Sequence record: PV754031.1
Reading direction: 5' to 3' (one strand)
Length of the DNA stretch: 64,000 nt
Shown one piece after another: positions 1 through 58,976 of the stretch. Below the pieces are notes generated by a model. That model worked only from the letters and a program-made list of their open reading frames with translations. It ran no database searches and was not told where the DNA came from. The translations under genes and the position numbers were made by a program. Numbering within the stretch: position 1 is the stretch's first letter; each line of letters starts with the position of its first letter.

Positions 1-348
1 ATTGAGTCTACCTGGTACAGAGTTGGTATCTACAGGACGAGTATTTTTTAACCAGGTATATTGAAGCATTGCTTCACGGATGGCATTAACAGTTTTAATA
101 GAGATGTATCTACTTCTATAATTCTTTACTGCTTCTAGCATGTAATATATTTCAGGAGCAAAGAATTTATAAAATGAAATACTACGACGACTAACCGTGT
201 TAAATAACTGCGTAGCTAATTTAGTGGTTCGCCAATACTTGTTAATATCTCTAATGAATGCAGCACCATCAAAACCACTGATGATAATTTCTTGATCAGT
301 TTCAGTAATTGATAGCGAGCCCATTAGCTTCCTAAATGAGTCTATCAT
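1..348 (-). CDS. 5' part of a large protein running off the left edge; probable SF2 helicase-like protein (phiKZ gp203 position)
   Basis: Manually translated open frame from ATG at 348 (MIDSFRKLMGSLSITETDQEIIISGFDGAAF...) to the window edge; AAGGA upstream. Product inferred from synteny; no helicase motifs in this fragment. Confidence 0.6.
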   Translation of the reverse strand, partial: MIDSFRKLMGSLSITETDQEIIISGFDGAAFIRDINKYWRTTKLATQLFNTVSRRSISFYKFFAPEIYYMLEAVKNYRSRYISIKTVNAIREAMLQYTWLKNTRPVDTNSVPGRLN

Positions 349-420
349 TGCATTTTTCCTTAAGGGGTATGTAAATATAATTCTAAGTCATAAGATTAGC
401 TAACGAATAAAAATACGCAC

Positions 421-617
421 AGTGCAATGATATAGAGCAAGGCAGTTTGCGTAAAACGCACTGCACTTTAAGGGGGTGATCCAGTCGTAAATAAACCGGG
501 GTACTAAAGTATCGTCAGGAACGACACGAACCCCAACTACGGTGCCTTGCTACTCACCGACCTCTAGATAGGGGTCGGACCTATTACATTAAAGGAGCCC
601 ACCAGGGGCTCCTTTAT
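421..617 (+). ncRNA. candidate structured ncRNA with its own terminator
   Basis: About 51% GC, non-coding; helices 436-444/543-551, 448-452/456-460, 498-502/530-534, 557-565/570-578; terminator at 591-615. Confidence 0.55.
591..615. terminator. intrinsic terminator hairpin (probably bidirectional)
   Basis: AAAGGAGCCC-accag-GGGCTCCTTT followed by ATG CC. Confidence 0.8.
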
Positions 618-644
618 GCCATTCATTATAAATTAATTTAAATC

Positions 645-652
645 TATATTAC
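645..652 (+). promoter_or_regulatory. phiKZ-type early promoter core TATATTAC
   Basis: AAATC-TATATTAC-A upstream of ORF 699. Confidence 0.7.
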
Positions 653-698
653 AGGATTACCATAAAGATATTTATCCTTTTATAATGAGGAAAAGATT

Positions 699-23882: not shown

Positions 23883-23927
23883 ATGTGTGTATTACAAAAT
23901 CAAATTAATGTGTCGAGGTTTTAATAG

Positions 23928-53030: not shown

Positions 53031-53107
53031 TGGTGCCGCCACTCCGAATCGAACGGAGGACCTACGCATTACAAGTGCGTTGCTCTACCTAGCTGAGCTA
53101 TAGCGGC
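53031..53107 (-). tRNA. tRNA-Thr(UGU)
   Basis: Cloverleaf GCCGCTATAGCTCAG...ACGCA-CTTGTAA-TGCGT...GTTCGATT...CACCA, encoded CCA. Confidence 0.97.
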
Positions 53108-53168
53108 GGAATCTTCTACATATAGTGTATATGAAAGTATTATTTTATTTATTATAATAAATAAAGTT

Positions 53169-53198
53169 ATATTCAAACATATTTAAACAGTATATCAT
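53169..53198 (+). promoter_or_regulatory. early promoter variant
   Basis: ATATTCAAACATATTTAAACAG-TATATCAT, close to the 23415-23450 promoter. Confidence 0.6.
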
Positions 53199-53254
53199 TA
53201 ACTTGATATTACTAAAAGTAATATTTTCTATTAATTGTAAATAGGATACTAAAT

Positions 53255-53392
53255 ATGAATATTGATCCAAAAACTCTTGGCATTATTATTAGCACCACTA
53301 TTGGCACCGTAGGTGCTCTTATTCTTACGTATGGTATTGCGAGAGCAGTACGTTGGAATAATAAACCTGATGTAAAAGATGTAGCAGAGTAA
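53255..53392 (+). CDS. 45-aa single-TM peptide (not in track)
   Basis: MNIDPKTLGIIISTTIGTVGALILTYGIARAVRW...; AGGA RBS, own promoter and terminator. Confidence 0.7.
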   Translation: MNIDPKTLGIIISTTIGTVGALILTYGIARAVRWNNKPDVKDVAE

Positions 53393-53402
53393 GATAACAT
53401 AA

Positions 53403-53425
53403 AGCTAGCCCATTAGGGGCTAGCT
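53403..53425. terminator. bidirectional terminator
   Basis: AGCTAGCCC-attag-GGGCTAGCT between convergent genes. Confidence 0.8.
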
Positions 53426-53449
53426 CTTATATTTATTTTTTTATTTGTT

Positions 53450-54079
53450 TTAACTTAGAGTATTATAATAAATAAATTTAGTTAATTCATCTTGTTGCTC
53501 TTTGATTATATTATTTTTCGTTTGTTTAACATTAATGTAATATTCAATAAATAACCAACGTCTATCATGTTTGGCTAAGTCTTTGAATTCAATTTTCTCA
53601 AATCGCCATGACTGTACAGTAGTCCTAATGAGATTACCGGATTTATTGATAATATACCCTTGCATGGTGTTAATTTGATCATCGATAGTAGGCGTTGGTA
53701 AAAATATCAAATAAACACCATCTGTATTTTTAGTGTGCATACTTTTTAATTTATACATCATTGGGTTAAAGTATTCATCACTTTTATGATAATCGCTTAA
53801 TTCTAACACAGCATCAATCATCATTTTAGCGCTTTCAGTAACACCAACATTTAGTAAATAATCATTAAGCTCTTTTAATGAATTATCTGTAAGTGATGCA
53901 TCTATGTGTTCTTCACTTATAGGTTCATTATAAACTAGTTTATTAATAGTTGAATTAACAATATTTAGCCTATCGATATCATAAACTGCTAGTGTTTGTT
54001 TACCAACATTTATTTTTAAGTCTTTACCTGATTCATTGATAAAATCATTTAAATCTACTTCAGTAAAATGAAAAGCCAT
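53450..54079 (-). CDS. hypothetical protein
   Basis: AAGGTG RBS on the minus strand. Confidence 0.8.
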   Translation of the reverse strand: MAFHFTEVDLNDFINESGKDLKINVGKQTLAVYDIDRLNIVNSTINKLVYNEPISEEHIDASLTDNSLKELNDYLLNVGVTESAKMMIDAVLELSDYHKSDEYFNPMMYKLKSMHTKNTDGVYLIFLPTPTIDDQINTMQGYIINKSGNLIRTTVQSWRFEKIEFKDLAKHDRRWLFIEYYINVKQTKNNIIKEQQDELTKFIYYNTLS

Positions 54080-54238
54080 TTTTATACACCTTTATGTTTT
54101 CCGTAGTGTTAAATTTTATTAACACCCGGTTTCAAGTTGAGTTATGTGTAGAACTAATCTACAAATAATATTAACTCTATGTATAATTTTACTTATAAAT
54201 AGACCACTCTATATAGAGGGGTATTAAGTCATATAAAG

Positions 54239-54340
54239 TTATTTTAGTGTGGGTCTAAATACAAACATTACGTCTACTTCATCAGTTGGGTCGACATCAT
54301 ATTCTGTCCCAGTATTATCAATCGCAACCAACATTCTCAC
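54239..54340 (-). CDS. 33-aa peptide (not in track)
   Basis: GAGGA RBS, GTG start, MRMLVAIDNTGTEYDVDPTDEVDVMFVFRPTLK. Confidence 0.4.
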   Translation of the reverse strand: MRMLVAIDNTGTEYDVDPTDEVDVMFVFRPTLK

Positions 54341-54550
54341 ATTCCTCGGTAAAGGGCTTTATGTGATTTAGATAGGCGAGTGATAAAATACCTAAATGCA
54401 CTGAGATATTCTCTGATAAATCCTTTACCTTTATTAAAATTATCACCTACATGGACCATTCAATCACTTTTATGTAGCTTGATTTCAATCAATTAAAGGG
54501 TATAACGAATGTAATGTATTTATACACGAATATAGTTATCATAAGCTCAA

Positions 54551-54841
54551 CTACTTGGGGTAAAAGAGTGGACGGAGATCAGTCTCATGGTATTCATCTT
54601 TGATATGGGAAAAGTACTTATTGAAATTATCCACACTATACGAAGTTCTAAGCCCATTTGGCCAAATCACTAACATGTCACCAACTTCGAATGCCGTGAT
54701 CATAGCCTCAAAGTCTTTTATGTTTACATGATCATTACCAAGTTTCACGAATCGACATGCACGGAAACCACATTCCCAGTCAGACGACATCCATTGACCA
54801 GCCTCAGTAATCAGCTTTGCACGAACTAATGTCTTAGCCAT
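54551..54841 (-). CDS. hypothetical protein
   Basis: Overlapping co-directional ORF. Confidence 0.75.
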   Translation of the reverse strand: MAKTLVRAKLITEAGQWMSSDWECGFRACRFVKLGNDHVNIKDFEAMITAFEVGDMLVIWPNGLRTSYSVDNFNKYFSHIKDEYHETDLRPLFYPK

Positions 54842-55019
54842 ACTTGGTACCCCAGTTTATCGTTTTGTCGAGAAGAGCTTGACTAGGTCGTTTATTACGA
54901 ATCTGATTCTTAATAGACTCATTTAGCTCTTCCATCGTTTTCCGAACTTTAACTAATCGTTCCTTTTGTTCATTTGTAGGAACACTACTAACTATATCTT
55001 GCAATGCTTTAAGTGACAT
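54834..55019 (-). CDS. small coiled-coil protein
   Basis: AGGG RBS. Confidence 0.65.
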   Translation of the reverse strand: MSLKALQDIVSSVPTNEQKERLVKVRKTMEELNESIKNQIRNKRPSQALLDKTINWGTKYG

Positions 55020-55080
55020 GTCTTTACCCTATTTGTATTCAGCTATAAGATTCAACTACTGGGTACTTTTACAAGACGAC

Positions 55081-55106
55081 ATAAAGGCAGCATTAGCTGC
55101 CTTTAT
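55081..55106 (-). terminator. terminator downstream of tRNA-Asn copy 1
   Basis: ATAAAGGCAGC-atta-GCTGCCTTTAT. Confidence 0.8.
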
Positions 55107-55150
55107 AGTTTACATAGTAGTGAAATATAACTAAATCTAAAACTATGAAT

Positions 55151-55226
<76 letters not shown>

Positions 55227-55387
55227 AGAATTATGGCGATTTTATATTAGAGATGAGTTACTGACAACCTAATATAGATATGTAATAACTACATATTATT
55301 ACAATCTGAGTATTATTTATTTCTTGTTATGACATTATGTAAATAACGTGTAGTTAATCTTATTAGAAACTATCAAAGTTACTAATT

Positions 55388-55900
55388 CTAACTAAAACGA
55401 ACCACCATTACCTCTGTACCAAAAGTATCTGCAACCCACTGGTTAAATTCTTTATCAGTGATACCGCGTAGGTTCAGATTAAATGAGGCATTGTCAACAA
55501 GAATATATTTTACAGACGATATTAATTCTTCTTTAATATCTTTTTGAATAGATGATTCCTCAGGTTGATGAATATATTTGCGGAGTTGGTGTGTAATTAA
55601 ACAAGAAACAATATTATCTTTAGCATTCTGGAACTTAGCCAGTACAGCCTGTTTAATTTTATCTTCTACAAATACAGCTAGACATTCGCCAGGGTGACGA
55701 TTAGCAAACTCAATCAATGCAGTTGTACTACCACATTGCCGACCTACAAATAATCCAACAGTCCTGTATTCACGAATAACAATATGACCAATAGAATTAG
55801 ATCGATAATTAACCCAGTTCTCATTCGTTTTTTGAATTAAAGCATCTAGGATATCTTGGTACTTTACAATAGTTCTTACAAACTGATTAGAGTTAGTCAT
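55388..55900 (-). CDS. small P-loop-like protein
   Basis: VGRQCGSTT (Walker A-like), YILVD (Walker B-like); AGGAG RBS. Confidence 0.6.
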   Translation of the reverse strand: MTNSNQFVRTIVKYQDILDALIQKTNENWVNYRSNSIGHIVIREYRTVGLFVGRQCGSTTALIEFANRHPGECLAVFVEDKIKQAVLAKFQNAKDNIVSCLITHQLRKYIHQPEESSIQKDIKEELISSVKYILVDNASFNLNLRGITDKEFNQWVADTFGTEVMVVRFS

Positions 55901-56184
55901 AATAGACTCCTTTATTACAATGTAGCATAGATTCAGTTTTTTAACTGGAATTAAATGCCGATTTTGAAAAGGTGATAAAACCTTTTCTCATCTATAAATG
56001 AATTTATAATAGTAACAATGAATATAACCAGGGGTGGCAAACCCCTGGCATTTAGACACACTCTATAATAAGTTCTACCACCGAGTGTGTTTAGTGGATA
56101 GATTTAAGAATACTTTATTATAGTACTCTTACATAATATCATCGTGCCAGTATAATTATCTAAATAGTTATAAATATTATTATT

Positions 56185-57192
56185 TTAATCAATGATTAAT
56201 GGTGCTAGTTTTACCTGATAGATACCTGATAACAATTGGCTTTTCAACATATATGCTCCACCACCAACTGGCATTTTAGATCCACCTACAATGATCATGC
56301 TATTATCCGGACCTTTAGCTATAGATGAAATATTAAGGAATCCGATACCTAGTTCAAATGGTTCAGCCCATTTCCGGCGCCTAATATTAAAACGTTGTGC
56401 AAACATTTTAGTTACACCGCCGACATCAACAGCGTTAAGGTAATTAAAATAGTCCCCATCTACATAACCATTACCTTGCCAGATTGTTCCTTTATCAGCA
56501 GGTATAATCATCCAAGGTGTTTGCTCCCATATTAAGGTAGTTGCATTATATCGATAAACTTCAAGATTAGGTATGTTCTTTGTATTATCCCAACCACCAA
56601 AATGGTAAAAGTAACCATTATAAAAGAATAACTGTTGACCTGAACGAGCACCACCTGAATAGTCTTGCCCGCTAAGCCAAGACTTACTTGATGGTTTTAA
56701 TCGCATTGCGTTTACGCCAATTGGGTTAACGCATAGAATAAGATCATTACCATCTGATGCGGAGGCTGTGCCCCAAAGTGGTACGGGACCACTATATCGC
56801 TCAACCCTATTGCCTGTAGCTATATCAAAATGTTGTATAAAGTTAGATGTTCCCGTACCACCATTACCAGCCGAGTTCCATCCAGTAATACCGCCATAAA
56901 CAATAAAGTTATTCTTATGTAATGTCCCAAATCCTAAAGATACCCCTGGTAAGAATGTTCCAGAAGCAGTTGCACCTATATCGGCAAATGGCGATATGGT
57001 AAAACGTCTGAACACAGTTGCAGCTGTTTGTCCTTCAGTATGATGACCAGATCCAACATACAGTGTATTTCCATCCACATATGACATTGTACCAGCTAAC
57101 GCTACAGGTAGATCACCTAATTTAATAATTTCATTAAATCCAACCAAGGGTAACTCTTCGCCTATATCTGGTGATAATAGTAATTCAAACAT
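56185..57192 (-). CDS. Kelch-repeat beta-propeller protein
   Basis: Repeated LYVGSG / IVYGG / YHFGG / IIVGG blades with Y/W-x-x-W spacing. Confidence 0.8.
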   Translation of the reverse strand: MFELLLSPDIGEELPLVGFNEIIKLGDLPVALAGTMSYVDGNTLYVGSGHHTEGQTAATVFRRFTISPFADIGATASGTFLPGVSLGFGTLHKNNFIVYGGITGWNSAGNGGTGTSNFIQHFDIATGNRVERYSGPVPLWGTASASDGNDLILCVNPIGVNAMRLKPSSKSWLSGQDYSGGARSGQQLFFYNGYFYHFGGWDNTKNIPNLEVYRYNATTLIWEQTPWMIIPADKGTIWQGNGYVDGDYFNYLNAVDVGGVTKMFAQRFNIRRRKWAEPFELGIGFLNISSIAKGPDNSMIIVGGSKMPVGGGAYMLKSQLLSGIYQVKLAPLIID

Positions 57193-57246
57193 GAGTGTGC
57201 TCTCAAGTAAATCATTTTAATTCATAAGATAACCCATGGCAACATA

Positions 57247-57270
57247 AAAGAGTAGCCGAAGCTACTCTTT
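57247..57270 (-). terminator. terminator downstream of the tRNA-Asp/Asn pair
   Basis: AAAGAGTAGC-cgaa-GCTACTCTTT (UUCG loop on the minus strand). Confidence 0.85.
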
Positions 57271-57276
57271 AGAATA

Positions 57277-57352
<76 letters not shown>

Positions 57353-57358
57353 ATTAAA

Positions 57359-57435
57359 TGGCGCGCCCAAGGGGACTCGAACCCCTGACCACCCGCGTGA
57401 CAGGCGGGTATTCTAACCAACTGAACTATGAGCGC
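57359..57435 (-). tRNA. tRNA-Asp(GUC)
   Basis: GCGCTCATAGTTCAG...CCCGC-CTGTCAC-GCGGG...CGCCA. Confidence 0.97.
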
Positions 57436-57487
57436 AAACGTATGGACATGACTTCCTACATAGTATTACATAACCAGTAATATTTTA

Positions 57488-57835
57488 TTACGGGCGATCA
57501 GTCCAGTGCTTGAAATAGTTACCATCCTTGGGACGATCGTACTTAGCAAGAATATTTTTAAGTTCTTCGCCGGACAACTTAATACTATCGCCTACTGGGC
57601 TATCCAGTTCAGGGCAAGGTTCAGTTTTACGTGTAATGATTAAATTATCAGTCCCATCTTTGAAGATAAAGATAAACTGCGTTTCATTAGCACTAATCTT
57701 TTTCTTAACGCAATGCTTTACTTCTGGATGTTTCTTGTGGATCGCTACAAAAGATTCAACAAGAGTTAGCTTTATAAACTCAGGGCTAATAAATGTGAAA
57801 TATACAGCGCTCTGCGTTGGGGTTAGATGATCCAT
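57488..57835 (-). CDS. hypothetical protein
   Basis: GGAG RBS. Confidence 0.75.
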   Translation of the reverse strand: MDHLTPTQSAVYFTFISPEFIKLTLVESFVAIHKKHPEVKHCVKKKISANETQFIFIFKDGTDNLIITRKTEPCPELDSPVGDSIKLSGEELKNILAKYDRPKDGNYFKHWTDRP

Positions 57836-57837
57836 AT

Positions 57838-58143
57838 TTACTCCGTATGTTTGAGATAGGCTTTAACTGCTTTAAGACCTTTATTAAAGAACATAGCTTC
57901 AACATAAGTAATGTTACTTACATCCTCGCCGATAAGTTCCCATTTGATGCAACGTGTAACAGCGTTGATTGTAATATCTAATCCGTTTGGGAATAGGGTT
58001 ACTTCATCGGTCAGGTGAATCCAATCGGGAGCCTTCGCTCCATTACGTAAACGGGGACTAAAAGTAAGATTATAAAGTGTTTGTAATGGTTGTCTCAATA
58101 GTTCTTTTTGTTCTTGATGTTCCATGTATTTTCCTAGAGACAT
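57838..58143 (-). CDS. hypothetical protein
   Basis: Tightly packed; true start may be 58125. Confidence 0.75.
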   Translation of the reverse strand: MSLGKYMEHQEQKELLRQPLQTLYNLTFSPRLRNGAKAPDWIHLTDEVTLFPNGLDITINAVTRCIKWELIGEDVSNITYVEAMFFNKGLKAVKAYLKHTE

Positions 58144-58355
58144 TTAAAAATATAAATAGAATGGTTATCTCTTTCGGTTATCTTTAGAGTATTCTCATTT
58201 CGAATAACTTCAAGAGACTTGTATTTATGTTCCAGAATATCCAGATGAGAAATACACTGTTCCCTATTTTCAAATAGGATATTACTTTCATTAGTCGAAA
58301 TGAAACCAAATAATCCAACTTTGATAGATAATACCAACATTATTACTGTATTCAT
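58134..58355 (-). CDS. small exported two-cysteine protein
   Basis: GAGGA RBS before ATG 58355; hydrophobic N-terminus; FENREQC...FKCL. Confidence 0.7.
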   Translation of the reverse strand: MNTVIMLVLSIKVGLFGFISTNESNILFENREQCISHLDILEHKYKSLEVIRNENTLKITERDNHSIYIFKCL

Positions 58356-58381
58356 GTTTTCCTCAATGAGACAGTATAAAA

Positions 58382-58399
58382 CCTCCCCCAAGTGGGAGG
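58382..58399 (-). terminator. terminator downstream of tRNA-CAU
   Basis: CCTCCC-loop-GGGAGG with a T-tract on the minus strand. Confidence 0.7.
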
Positions 58400-58407
58400 C
58401 TAGTATA

Positions 58408-58484
58408 TGGTGGGCCCAGCAGGACTTGAACCTGCGACCAAGCGATTATGAGTCGCCTGCTCTAACCAACTGAGCTATAGGCCC
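58408..58484 (-). tRNA. tRNA with CAU anticodon, Ile2 (lysidine) type rather than Met
   Basis: GGGCCTATAGCTCAG...GGCGA-CTCATAA-TCGCT-TGGTCGCAGGTTCAAGT..., close to bacterial tRNA-Ile2; C4:G69 and C5:G68. Confidence 0.85.
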
Positions 58485-58491
58485 TTTTTAT

Positions 58492-58785
58492 TTATTCTGG
58501 TAAGAATGTTCCATCTTTTTGACGGACTAATACACCTGACCATTTGAATGTATTTGTATCACTAGCAGGGCACTCTCTAATTACATTGGTTCTAAATGTG
58601 CCATGTGGATAGGTTACAGTGAATGTAATATGGTTATTACAAACATGTAATACAGAAGACTTTGCTTCTGTTAGATAGTGTAAGCCTTGAGCTAATTGAA
58701 TATTAGTTAATTCAGGGTCACTAAGAATAGCGTAAAGAGCTGTTCCTATAATTTGATGTTCCCATGATATCCATTTATTATCCAT
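58492..58785 (-). CDS. hypothetical protein
   Basis: ORF between tRNAs with AGGA RBS. Confidence 0.75.
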   Translation of the reverse strand: MDNKWISWEHQIIGTALYAILSDPELTNIQLAQGLHYLTEAKSSVLHVCNNHITFTVTYPHGTFRTNVIRECPASDTNTFKWSGVLVRQKDGTFLPE

Positions 58786-58806
58786 CCTATTTACCTATTA
58801 TTAAAA

Positions 58807-58882
58807 TGGTCGGAGTGGGGAGACTCGAACTCCCGACATCCTGCTCCCAAAGCAGGCGCGCTACCAACTGCGCTACACTCCG
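58807..58882 (-). tRNA. tRNA-Pro(UGG)
   Basis: CGGAGTGTAGCGCAG...CCTGC-TTTGGGA-GCAGG...CGACCA. Confidence 0.97.
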
Positions 58883-58891
58883 TATTTAAAT

Positions 58892-58976
58892 TGGTGCCCG
58901 AAGTCGGATTCGAACCGACAAGACCGTAGCCGGAAGATTTTAAGTCTTCTGTGTTTACCAATTTCACCATTCGGGC
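58892..58976 (-). tRNA. tRNA-Leu(UAA)
   Basis: GCCCGAATGGTGAAATTGG...GAAGA-CTTAAAA-TCTTC, long variable arm, CCA end. Confidence 0.97.

Follow-up and report, generated by a model that had tools for sequence, protein, structure and literature searches.

What occupies the long gap between the genes gp203 and gp204 of phiKZ-like jumbo phages, and what could it do in the infected cell? The question was raised by a stretch of 64,000 nt of sequence record PV754031.1, hereafter the window, in which 350 bp separate the start of gp203 (minus strand, start codon at 348) from gp204 (plus strand, ATG at 699). Over positions 350-700 the window is 100 % identical to phage Bobae and 99.7 % identical to phiKZ (AF399011; phiKZ coordinate = window + 212,419), and the gap carries no annotation in any record of 57 phiKZ-like genomes. 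An original prediction, made from the letters of the sequence, had placed a structured, stand-alone non-coding RNA (ncRNA) here. The comparison of homologues points to a predicted ncRNA of ~183 nt on the plus strand at 435-617 (phiKZ 212854-213036), an element present once in the window, with covariance model matches in relatives, without a conserved open reading frame (ORF) and without an Rfam family. Judged by its sequence relationships, it belongs to a new jumbo-phage RNA family that is tied to the helicase locus and defined by an invariant complement of the anti-Shine-Dalgarno (anti-SD) end of the 16S rRNA. The 5′ part of gp203 itself (1-348, minus strand), an SNF2-type helicase gene according to the annotation of relatives and synteny, lies outside the RNA.

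The element differs from its surroundings in composition and stability. A GC-rich element between divergent genes had been recognized from the start, and the values bear this out: 50.8 % GC in 435-617 stand against 34.9 % in the window, and 0.28 % of all 183-nt segments equal or exceed this value. The plus strand folds with -72 kcal/mol versus -51.9 ± 4.3 kcal/mol for dinucleotide shuffles (z = -4.7). The minus strand folds comparably well (z = -4.3), thus energy alone has no power to assign the strand. The first inspection had found no ORF, and none is common to the homologues; nothing pointing to a self-cleavage activity was found in the element. Rfam 15 with gathering thresholds yielded nothing at the locus and only seven tRNAs elsewhere in the window; at E ≤ 10 only two terminator-like chance matches of 14-16 bits appeared in the window, and four homologous loci were without a match. 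The early failure to name a known Rfam family therefore stands.

Partial BLAST matches were obtained in PA1C, PS119XW, HPP-Temi, PhiPA3, Phabio, 201phi2-1 and Viktualia, in each case within an unannotated gap of 250-320 bp. Scans with exact patterns added six uncultivated jumbo-phage contigs, four from IMG/VR (L124, L346, L349, L350) and two from metagenomes (L144, L175). A loose DNA pattern applied to IMG/VR gave mostly chance matches and was discarded; stricter patterns worked. Among 185,579 bacterial and archaeal genomes (GTDB) the strict pattern detected no cellular homologue at that stringency, only coding sequences and genuine 16S genes; the metagenome contigs L144 and L175 that it yielded are of jumbo-phage size. 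A covariance model (R1) was built on 11 sequences. It scored three unseen members at 86-102 bits and found one copy only in the 64-kb window; its matches outside the training set, 40-123 bits in all, always adjoined the helicase gene. Nineteen contigs were collected via the helicase N-terminus, and in 14 of these, among them a more distant new clade (L363-L368) at 40-54 bits, R1 matched directly beside the helicase start. In four Noxifer-like contigs (L369-L372) an unfiltered search combined with visual inspection uncovered a copy that has diverged further but keeps both place and layout. The RNA gene adjoins the helicase start in 18 of the 19 helicase-fetched loci; the sole contig without the RNA is L373, a 58-kb contig with a partial helicase match. 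The family comprises ~18 distinct lineages, and every named member infects Pseudomonas.

The homologues preserve a fold rather than a sequence. P1 closes the molecule: its 5′ strand GAGCAAGGCA (435-444, plus strand) pairs with the 3′ strand UGCCUUGCU-A-CU (543-553), a pairing which includes the long-range helix first seen as AGCAAGGCA (436-444) with TGCCTTGCT (543-551). P1 is kept in 14 of 14 lineages tested despite differing sequences, by way of compensatory changes. Its variants are GUCAAGGCA; GACAA-C-GGCA; GUCAAGAAGCA/UGCUUCUU-C-GAC; GAGCGAGGC with G-U pairs; and GUGCAAGG or GUACGAGG in the Noxifer clade. Within the P1 core both sides changed at three of six pairs. AAGGC/GCCUU turned into GAAGC/GCUUC in L349 and L350, and two G-U pairs occur in L124. 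P2 (442-464, plus strand), GCAG-UU-UGCG-UAAAA-CGCA-CUGC, forms a hairpin in all lineages. The hairpin at 448-460 and the competing GCAG/CTGC extension (442-445/461-464) had both been noticed early and are present, the hairpin being kept by compensation in relatives; as P2 shares G442, C443 and A444 with P1, the helix boundary at the junction is ambiguous. The outer stem of P2 is GCAG/CUGC, GGU/ACC, GAUA/UAUC or GUC/GAC and the inner stem UGCG/CGCA, CGC/GCG, GUGC/GCAC or GCGC/GCGC, depending on the lineage, with CUAC-GACA-GUAG or UUUC-GACA-GAAA in the Noxifer clade. In the P3 domain (498-534, plus strand), which is backed by covariation, a closing helix GGGGU/ACCCC (498-502/530-534) surrounds the hairpin 512-524 (UCGU-CAGGA-ACGA). 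The closing helix, likewise part of the first description, is maintained through compensatory changes as GAUAC/GUAUC, GGUAC/GUACC, CAGG/CCUG or GAGCUGC/GCAGCUC, and the inner hairpin has a GNRA loop (GGGA, GAGA, GUGA, GCGA) in 13 of 14 lineages. The junction J3/1, AACUACGG (535-542, plus strand), is conserved and unpaired, with an ACG that is nearly invariant in alignment A7.

In the 3′ tail the P4 hairpin CCGACCUCU-AGAU-AGGGGUCGG (557-578, plus strand) has the coordinates originally assigned to it, including one pair, T563-G572, that is a G-U pair on the plus strand only. A hairpin occurs at the same place in most relatives with differing stems, e.g., CGUUGG/CCGACG in 201phi2-1 versus CGUCAAC/GUUGACG in Viktualia; P4 is the least well-aligned part of the RNA. 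Despite the differing stems the P4 loops are often YUAUCUA-like: CUCUAGAUA in phiKZ (window 563-571), CUAUCUAAUC in Phabio and HPP-Temi, UUAUCUAG in L144 (further sites at L003 ~1655-1668 and L333 ~1668-1680); no partner was identified for these loops.

Covariation was quantified on an alignment of 19 sequences. Standard pairs filled 88.7 % of the cells, versus 27-43 % when the 3′ partners were slid by one to three columns, and 13 of 19 pairs (in P1, P2, P3 and the GNRA hairpin) had changed on both sides. The original prediction had proposed orthologue covariation as a check, and the substitutions do compensate the helices: 50 compensatory cells were observed versus 16.6 ± 3.1 in shuffles, and none of 500 shuffles reached the observed count. 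An alignment of 14 sequences gave the same picture. The alignment was fitted to the covariance model and leans towards the structure; thermodynamic folds of each sequence, which are independent of the model, agree. The element is a structured RNA whose fold is under selection. Two further pairings were dismissed. Only phiKZ and SL2 can form the proposed pseudoknots GTCGT/ACGAC and GGTGA/TCACC, whose partner sequences are missing elsewhere in the family. A UAAGG/CCUUG pairing suggested by RNAalifold, a possible switch to sequester the strand discussed next, is not a conserved feature because the compensated P1 of L349 and L350 (GAAGC/GCUUC) largely loses it.

Between P2 and P3 lies the unpaired segment J2/3, UAAGGGGGUGAUCCAGUCGUA (469-489, plus strand). 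This feature, which the original prediction did not contain, is the reverse complement of the 16S rRNA 3′ end. It forms 21 uninterrupted base pairs with the last 21 nt of the 16S (…UGCGGCUGGAUCACCUCCUUA-3′), including three G-U pairs, at -38.2 kcal/mol. The next best duplex among 42,650 segments on both strands of the 64 kb was interrupted and reached -26.0 kcal/mol (mean -7.8, standard deviation 3.2). Homologues present 14-21 contiguous pairs with the 16S 3′ end at -29 to -38 kcal/mol; the duplex with the 13-nt free tail alone amounts to -20 to -22 kcal/mol, versus a predicted opening cost of 3.6-7.6 kcal/mol. The core AGGRGGUGAUCCA is identical in every family member while the surrounding helices drift, and no conserved intramolecular partner for the strand was found. 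All 14 lineages compared are complementary to the 16S at positions 2-15, and 13 of them also at positions 16-18. Three positions vary (A/G opposite U twice, C/U opposite G), always between Watson-Crick and wobble pairs and never to a mismatch, which fits a plus-strand RNA pairing with the 16S and fits a minus-strand mimic less. As in the seed of a trans-acting riboregulator, the sequence is invariant, unpaired and complementary to its candidate target in all lineages. Conservation, fold, complementarity and energetics are thus directly supported.

Pseudomonas 16S reads GGCUGG just upstream of the tail. The 16S 3′ string …CUGCGGCUGGAUCACCUCCUU was confirmed on real 16S genes, one of which ends at position 1533/1533 of the Rfam SSU model, and the tail GAUCACCUCCUUA has been reported for Beta- and Gammaproteobacteria (PMC6288834). 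The match covers the 13-nt anti-SD tail and, in most lineages, 4-8 nt of the 3′ strand of helix 45. The routes of this extension differ: contiguous with wobbles in phiKZ, exact in PA1C, one mismatch followed by 5 bp in the 201phi2-1 group, and a bulge followed by 3-4 bp in the Noxifer clade. These short extra stretches in helix 45 could be chance. BLAST of the real 16S 3′ end against all phage records detected no other phage group with such an element. The search gave otherwise rRNA contamination, a rrn fragment in phage AP1 and a 21-nt match in the scaffolding gene of phiKMV-like phages. The latter is a 20/21-nt antisense match to the 16S (GAACCUGCGGCUGGAUCACCU) ~110 nt inside the gene (L374:201-221; LUZ19 23,906-23,926), repeated in ~45 other phiKMV-like phages; with an E-value of 3 and in coding sequence, it is probably chance kept by descent.

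A second stretch of the RNA, CUACGGUGCCUUG (536-549, J3/1 and the P1 3′ strand), is antisense to CAAGGUAGCCGUAG of the 16S (nt ~1498-1511), which forms the 5′ side of helix 45. Because the two matches are collinear, the RNA resembles the final ~45 nt of the 16S in antisense, with P3 in place of the helix-45 loop. A conserved function of this second complementarity was rejected: it is lost in L349 and L350, hence the intramolecular P1 is what selection maintains. The second match may reflect ancestry, not function.

A genuine plus-strand ncRNA could use its invariant strand in another way, as a site for a phage or host protein, for another RNA or for a tertiary contact, the 16S match being a relic, e.g., of an rDNA fragment captured long ago, or a by-product without ribosome binding. 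We regard this as rather unlikely. Fold and conservation require no particular target, and strands that stay invariant and unpaired commonly serve as binding sites for proteins. In the mature 30S subunit, helix 45 is not readily accessible. Phages also do carry rrn fragments, the Aeromonas phage AP1 being an example. A relic, however, would decay in sequence as the helix sequences have done, and neither chance nor a relic readily explains a 17-nt match in ~18 lineages whose variation is solely from Watson-Crick to wobble and which, at -38 kcal/mol, is an outlier in 64 kb.

The ends and the strand of the transcript we infer from motifs and synteny, in which promoter, terminator and independence from flanking genes, the marks of a stand-alone ncRNA gene, can be recognized. 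A promoter-like region (403-435, plus strand) consists of an A-rich stretch (406-413), TAC (414-416) and TATAG (431-435). The combination of A-rich run, TAC(T), ~13 nt and TATAG is kept in all members of the phiKZ, PA1C, PhiPA3, Phabio and 201phi2-1 types, with TATG in the Noxifer clade. This agrees with the middle promoters published for phiKZ, in which a TACT, preceded by A-rich sequence, is centred ~22 nt before the transcription start site; another description gives them a weak AT-rich motif at -24. It also fits the late-promoter motif T-3ATG+1, whereas early promoters contain AT-rich elements centred near -10. In each lineage P1 begins to pair at the G of TATAG or TATG, which places the start near G435; a start there (± 2 nt) is likely. 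A look-alike of the promoter motif (TACT, 14 nt, TATATG) is located ~10 nt before the tRNA gene at window 53107, one of a cluster of seven at 53034-58976 on the minus strand.

The terminator (591-618, plus strand) is a 10-bp stem (591-600/606-615) followed by UUAUG. Its stem had been seen at 591-615 and shows compensatory changes in relatives; phiKZ terminators are known as a stem-loop followed by TTAT. The window contains more than 40 sites with a hairpin and TTAT[GT], and at 591-618 the plus strand alone qualifies. A generic scan for E. coli-type terminators with a U-run made no call here, because phiKZ terminators end in TTAT without U-runs. Elsewhere several GC-rich hairpins with TTAT(G/T) read as terminators on both strands, as bidirectional pairs (sites in the window include 15270/15293, 15912/15937, 22707/22735, 53402/53433 and 61646/61671), and many of the hairpins have the stem CCCUCCC…GGGAGGG. 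The RNA is probably transcribed from a middle/late-type promoter by the non-virion RNA polymerase of the phage, up to the phage-type TTAT terminator at 591-618. An AT-rich, early-promoter-like motif (…AAATCTATATTAC, 637-653, plus strand) opens the next unit ahead of gp204, in agreement with the early promoter first suspected beyond the terminator. The motif CTATATTAC/CTATATCAC after the terminator recurs in L144, L124, Phabio, L363-L368 and the Noxifer clade.

With promoter-like motif and TTATG terminator on the plus strand in every lineage, flanking genes co-oriented with the RNA in Phabio, 201phi2-1 and PhiPA3, an extra plus-strand terminator just upstream of the promoter motif in Phabio, 201phi2-1, L175, L346 and L349, and P1 more stable on the plus strand in 13 of 14 lineages, the functional strand is very probably the plus strand. 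These observations also bear on the minus strand, whose transcript would contain CUGGAUCACCCCCUUA and so imitate the 16S 3′ end; it might lure away a factor that recognizes this end (bS21, Era, KsgA, a maturation RNase or a toxin that cleaves the anti-SD) or act as a sponge for Shine-Dalgarno (SD) sequences. Such a role seems improbable to us, even if the fold of the minus strand is no less stable and this strand reads CAAGGCACCGUAG, near the CAAGGUAGCCGUAG of the 16S. OLE RNA, an ncRNA that binds bS21 via an anti-SD mimic, offers a precedent, and toxins that cut the anti-SD have been reported. The motifs and flanking genes named above nevertheless lie on the other strand, and 13 of 18 lineages would read CCCCC on the minus strand instead of the true CCUCC; this is odd in a mimic and harmless as a G-U wobble in a complement.

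A cis-acting 5′ leader or attenuator would be a different use of the plus strand: transcripts would stop at the terminator or read through into gp204 and beyond, and the SD-like strand would load or pause ribosomes or polymerase. ONT-cappable-seq reported 17 '5′UTR-derived' short phiKZ RNAs that arise by premature termination, some with read-through, and in phiKZ, Phabio, 201phi2-1 and PhiPA3 the gene that follows has the orientation of the RNA. In PA1C and HPP-Temi, however, the genes to the right of the RNA are on the opposite strand and the neighbours converge on the RNA, which therefore cannot be their leader. The downstream genes are also non-homologous between lineages, whereas the RNA keeps the helicase gene, in most cases divergently oriented, as its neighbour; the next unit has its own early promoter. 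As transcription and translation are separated in the phage nucleus, attenuation coupled to ribosomes is unlikely. A leader function is accordingly given little credit. The original view of a stand-alone structured ncRNA rather than a leader is upheld by helices covarying in ~18 lineages and by the lack of a co-oriented following gene in PA1C and HPP-Temi.

Could the SD-like strand be a true ribosome binding site from which the element expresses a small peptide? Individual lineages do contain short ORFs, e.g., one of 13 codons starting with GUG in the 201phi2-1 group, and tiny coding sequences (CDSs) are annotated at the locus in two GenBank records: those of HPP-Temi and Viktualia have hypothetical CDSs of 29-31 codons over the RNA gene (L333:1440-1535, 1633-1722; L334:1498-1587). 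No ORF is shared, however. Frames and lengths differ, the ORF of the 201phi2-1 type is absent from phiKZ and PA1C, and no lineage has a start codon 5-10 nt past the GGRGG core. A peptide is hence extremely improbable, and the annotated CDSs, not conserved, are probably spurious calls.

To the left of the RNA promoter, a block CATAAGATTAGC (window 388-399) is kept in nearly all lineages, and its minus strand reads …CTTATGA. The TATG at 392-389 (minus strand) fits the late motif T-3ATG+1 and would give the helicase mRNA a leader of ~41 nt. It is the probable promoter of gp203, adjoining that of the RNA and pointing the other way.

How could an RNA with an exposed complement of the 16S 3′ end act? 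A stand-alone phage RNA of ~183 nt that acts in trans by pairing with the host 16S 3′ end has, in our estimate, about an even chance of being correct. Somewhat short of even, and offered tentatively, is the more specific proposal of a dedicated jumbo-phage RNA that would form a 17-21 bp duplex with the 16S 3′ end, invade helix 45, and inactivate, mark or re-programme ribosomes or block the maturation of the 30S subunit. Pairing in vivo and its consequence we infer along the following lines. The plus-strand RNA would be made in the middle or late phase and exit the phage nucleus. P1 would close the fold, and P2 and the GNRA-bearing P3 would present an unpaired strand of 20-25 nt between them. 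This strand would pair in trans with the anti-SD tail of 30S subunits, of pre-16S or of immature 30S, and binding to the 16S would depend on GGUGAUCC. An anti-SD occupied without a start codon behind it would hold the platform unproductively, and SD-dependent initiation would be blocked, biased or re-programmed. Alternatively, the opening of helix 45 could disable or stall the subunit, or disturb 30S maturation.

Several points weigh against pairing with the 16S as the function. Pairing past G1530 needs helix 45 opened, and helix 45 is folded and packed in the mature 30S. Phage mRNAs use SD sequences themselves, such as the GAGGA that precedes gp204, so a global block of the anti-SD would harm the phage unless dosage, timing or location limit it. 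In 13 of 18 lineages the core reads GGGGG instead of the perfect GGAGG. All named hosts are Pseudomonas with, as far as is known, the same 16S 3′ end, leaving no target variation for co-variation. Nor do total fold energy (8 of 14) and the counts of G-U versus A-C (16 to 14) tell the strands apart.

The RNA would bear on how phiKZ-like phages take over translation. Phage transcription occurs inside a protein nucleus and phage mRNAs are preferentially loaded onto ribosomes; contact with the ribosome was so far shown solely for proteins, e.g., PhiKZ014. If the proposal holds, an RNA that pairs with the anti-SD would give a virus a new way of gripping the ribosome; no earlier natural RNA that targets the 16S 3′ end in trans is known to us. 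A ribosome-targeting function is strongly suggested by the conserved complementarity rather than demonstrated. Whatever the target, the element defines a new RNA family that is supported by covariation and spans no fewer than five jumbo-phage groups of genus rank. Neither Rfam nor any genome annotation contains it, and it corrects spurious small CDS calls in deposited genomes.

A literature search for phage RNAs pairing with the 16S or the anti-SD found none, and a 2025 review of nucleus-forming phages mentions none. The known systems resemble the phage RNA in parts. The T4-like Aeromonas phage AP1 (MT713136 233,818-234,080; L354:1501-1763) carries 24/26 nt of the 16S 3′ end in sense orientation, with tRNA-Ile and tRNA-Ala ~75 nt after the 16S end in the order of the bacterial rrn spacer; the arrangement suggests that the phage picked up part of an rRNA operon from a host. 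The phiKZ RNA does not look like such a fragment: unlike AP1, it has only a 17-21-nt match, antisense and within unrelated helices. Grad-seq and ONT-cappable-seq yielded short ncRNA candidates in phiKZ and 201phi2-1 (3′UTR_PHIKZ298, 5′UTR_gp40, an sRNA upstream of gp182/gp277). They come from the same phages, measure 70-200 nt and have a promoter closely before a terminator, and one of them is reported to be conserved across jumbo-phage genera. Those named in the main texts, however, are at other loci, and none is described as complementary to rRNA; the present locus may be among the unnamed entries in the supplementary tables of those surveys.

The target and the expected effect on SD-dependent initiation are those of synthetic oligonucleotides complementary to the 16S 3′ end, which are classical inhibitors of initiation in vitro. 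The oligonucleotides are artificial, and our literature search found no natural trans-acting counterpart. An archaeal Val-tRNA fragment is reported to bind the small subunit and inhibit translation (PMC11009984). It is likewise a small RNA acting on the small subunit itself and not on one mRNA; it is a piece of a host tRNA at the decoding site, whereas the RNA described here would be the product of a dedicated phage gene, with predicted Watson-Crick pairing to the 16S 3′ end. In OLE RNA, the SD/anti-SD mimic of P6 binds the ribosomal protein bS21 (PMC12054373). Both are structured ncRNAs with a sequence derived from the SD/anti-SD pair and tied to the 30S platform. The logic is a mirror image: OLE contains the anti-SD itself, paired in cis with an SD-like strand and binding a protein, while the phage RNA presents an unpaired complement of the anti-SD; its plus strand contains no CCUCC, and its SD-like strand has no conserved partner in cis. 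OLE is a 600-nt RNA of Bacillota, and no relationship in sequence or structure to the phage RNA was found (no Rfam match).

The closest counterpart is the SD/anti-SD interaction of mRNAs. The partner, the 16S tail GAUCACCUCCUUA, and the GGRGG core are the same, and the phage segment holds the full 13-nt complement of a 'maximal SD'. Unlike an mRNA, the phage RNA has neither a start codon nor a conserved ORF, and in no lineage does the core stand 5-10 nt before the start of one; the complementarity of 14-21 nt is two to three times the usual length and reaches helix 45. The phage strand is located in a junction of a covarying RNA with its own promoter-like motif and terminator and would therefore act in trans.

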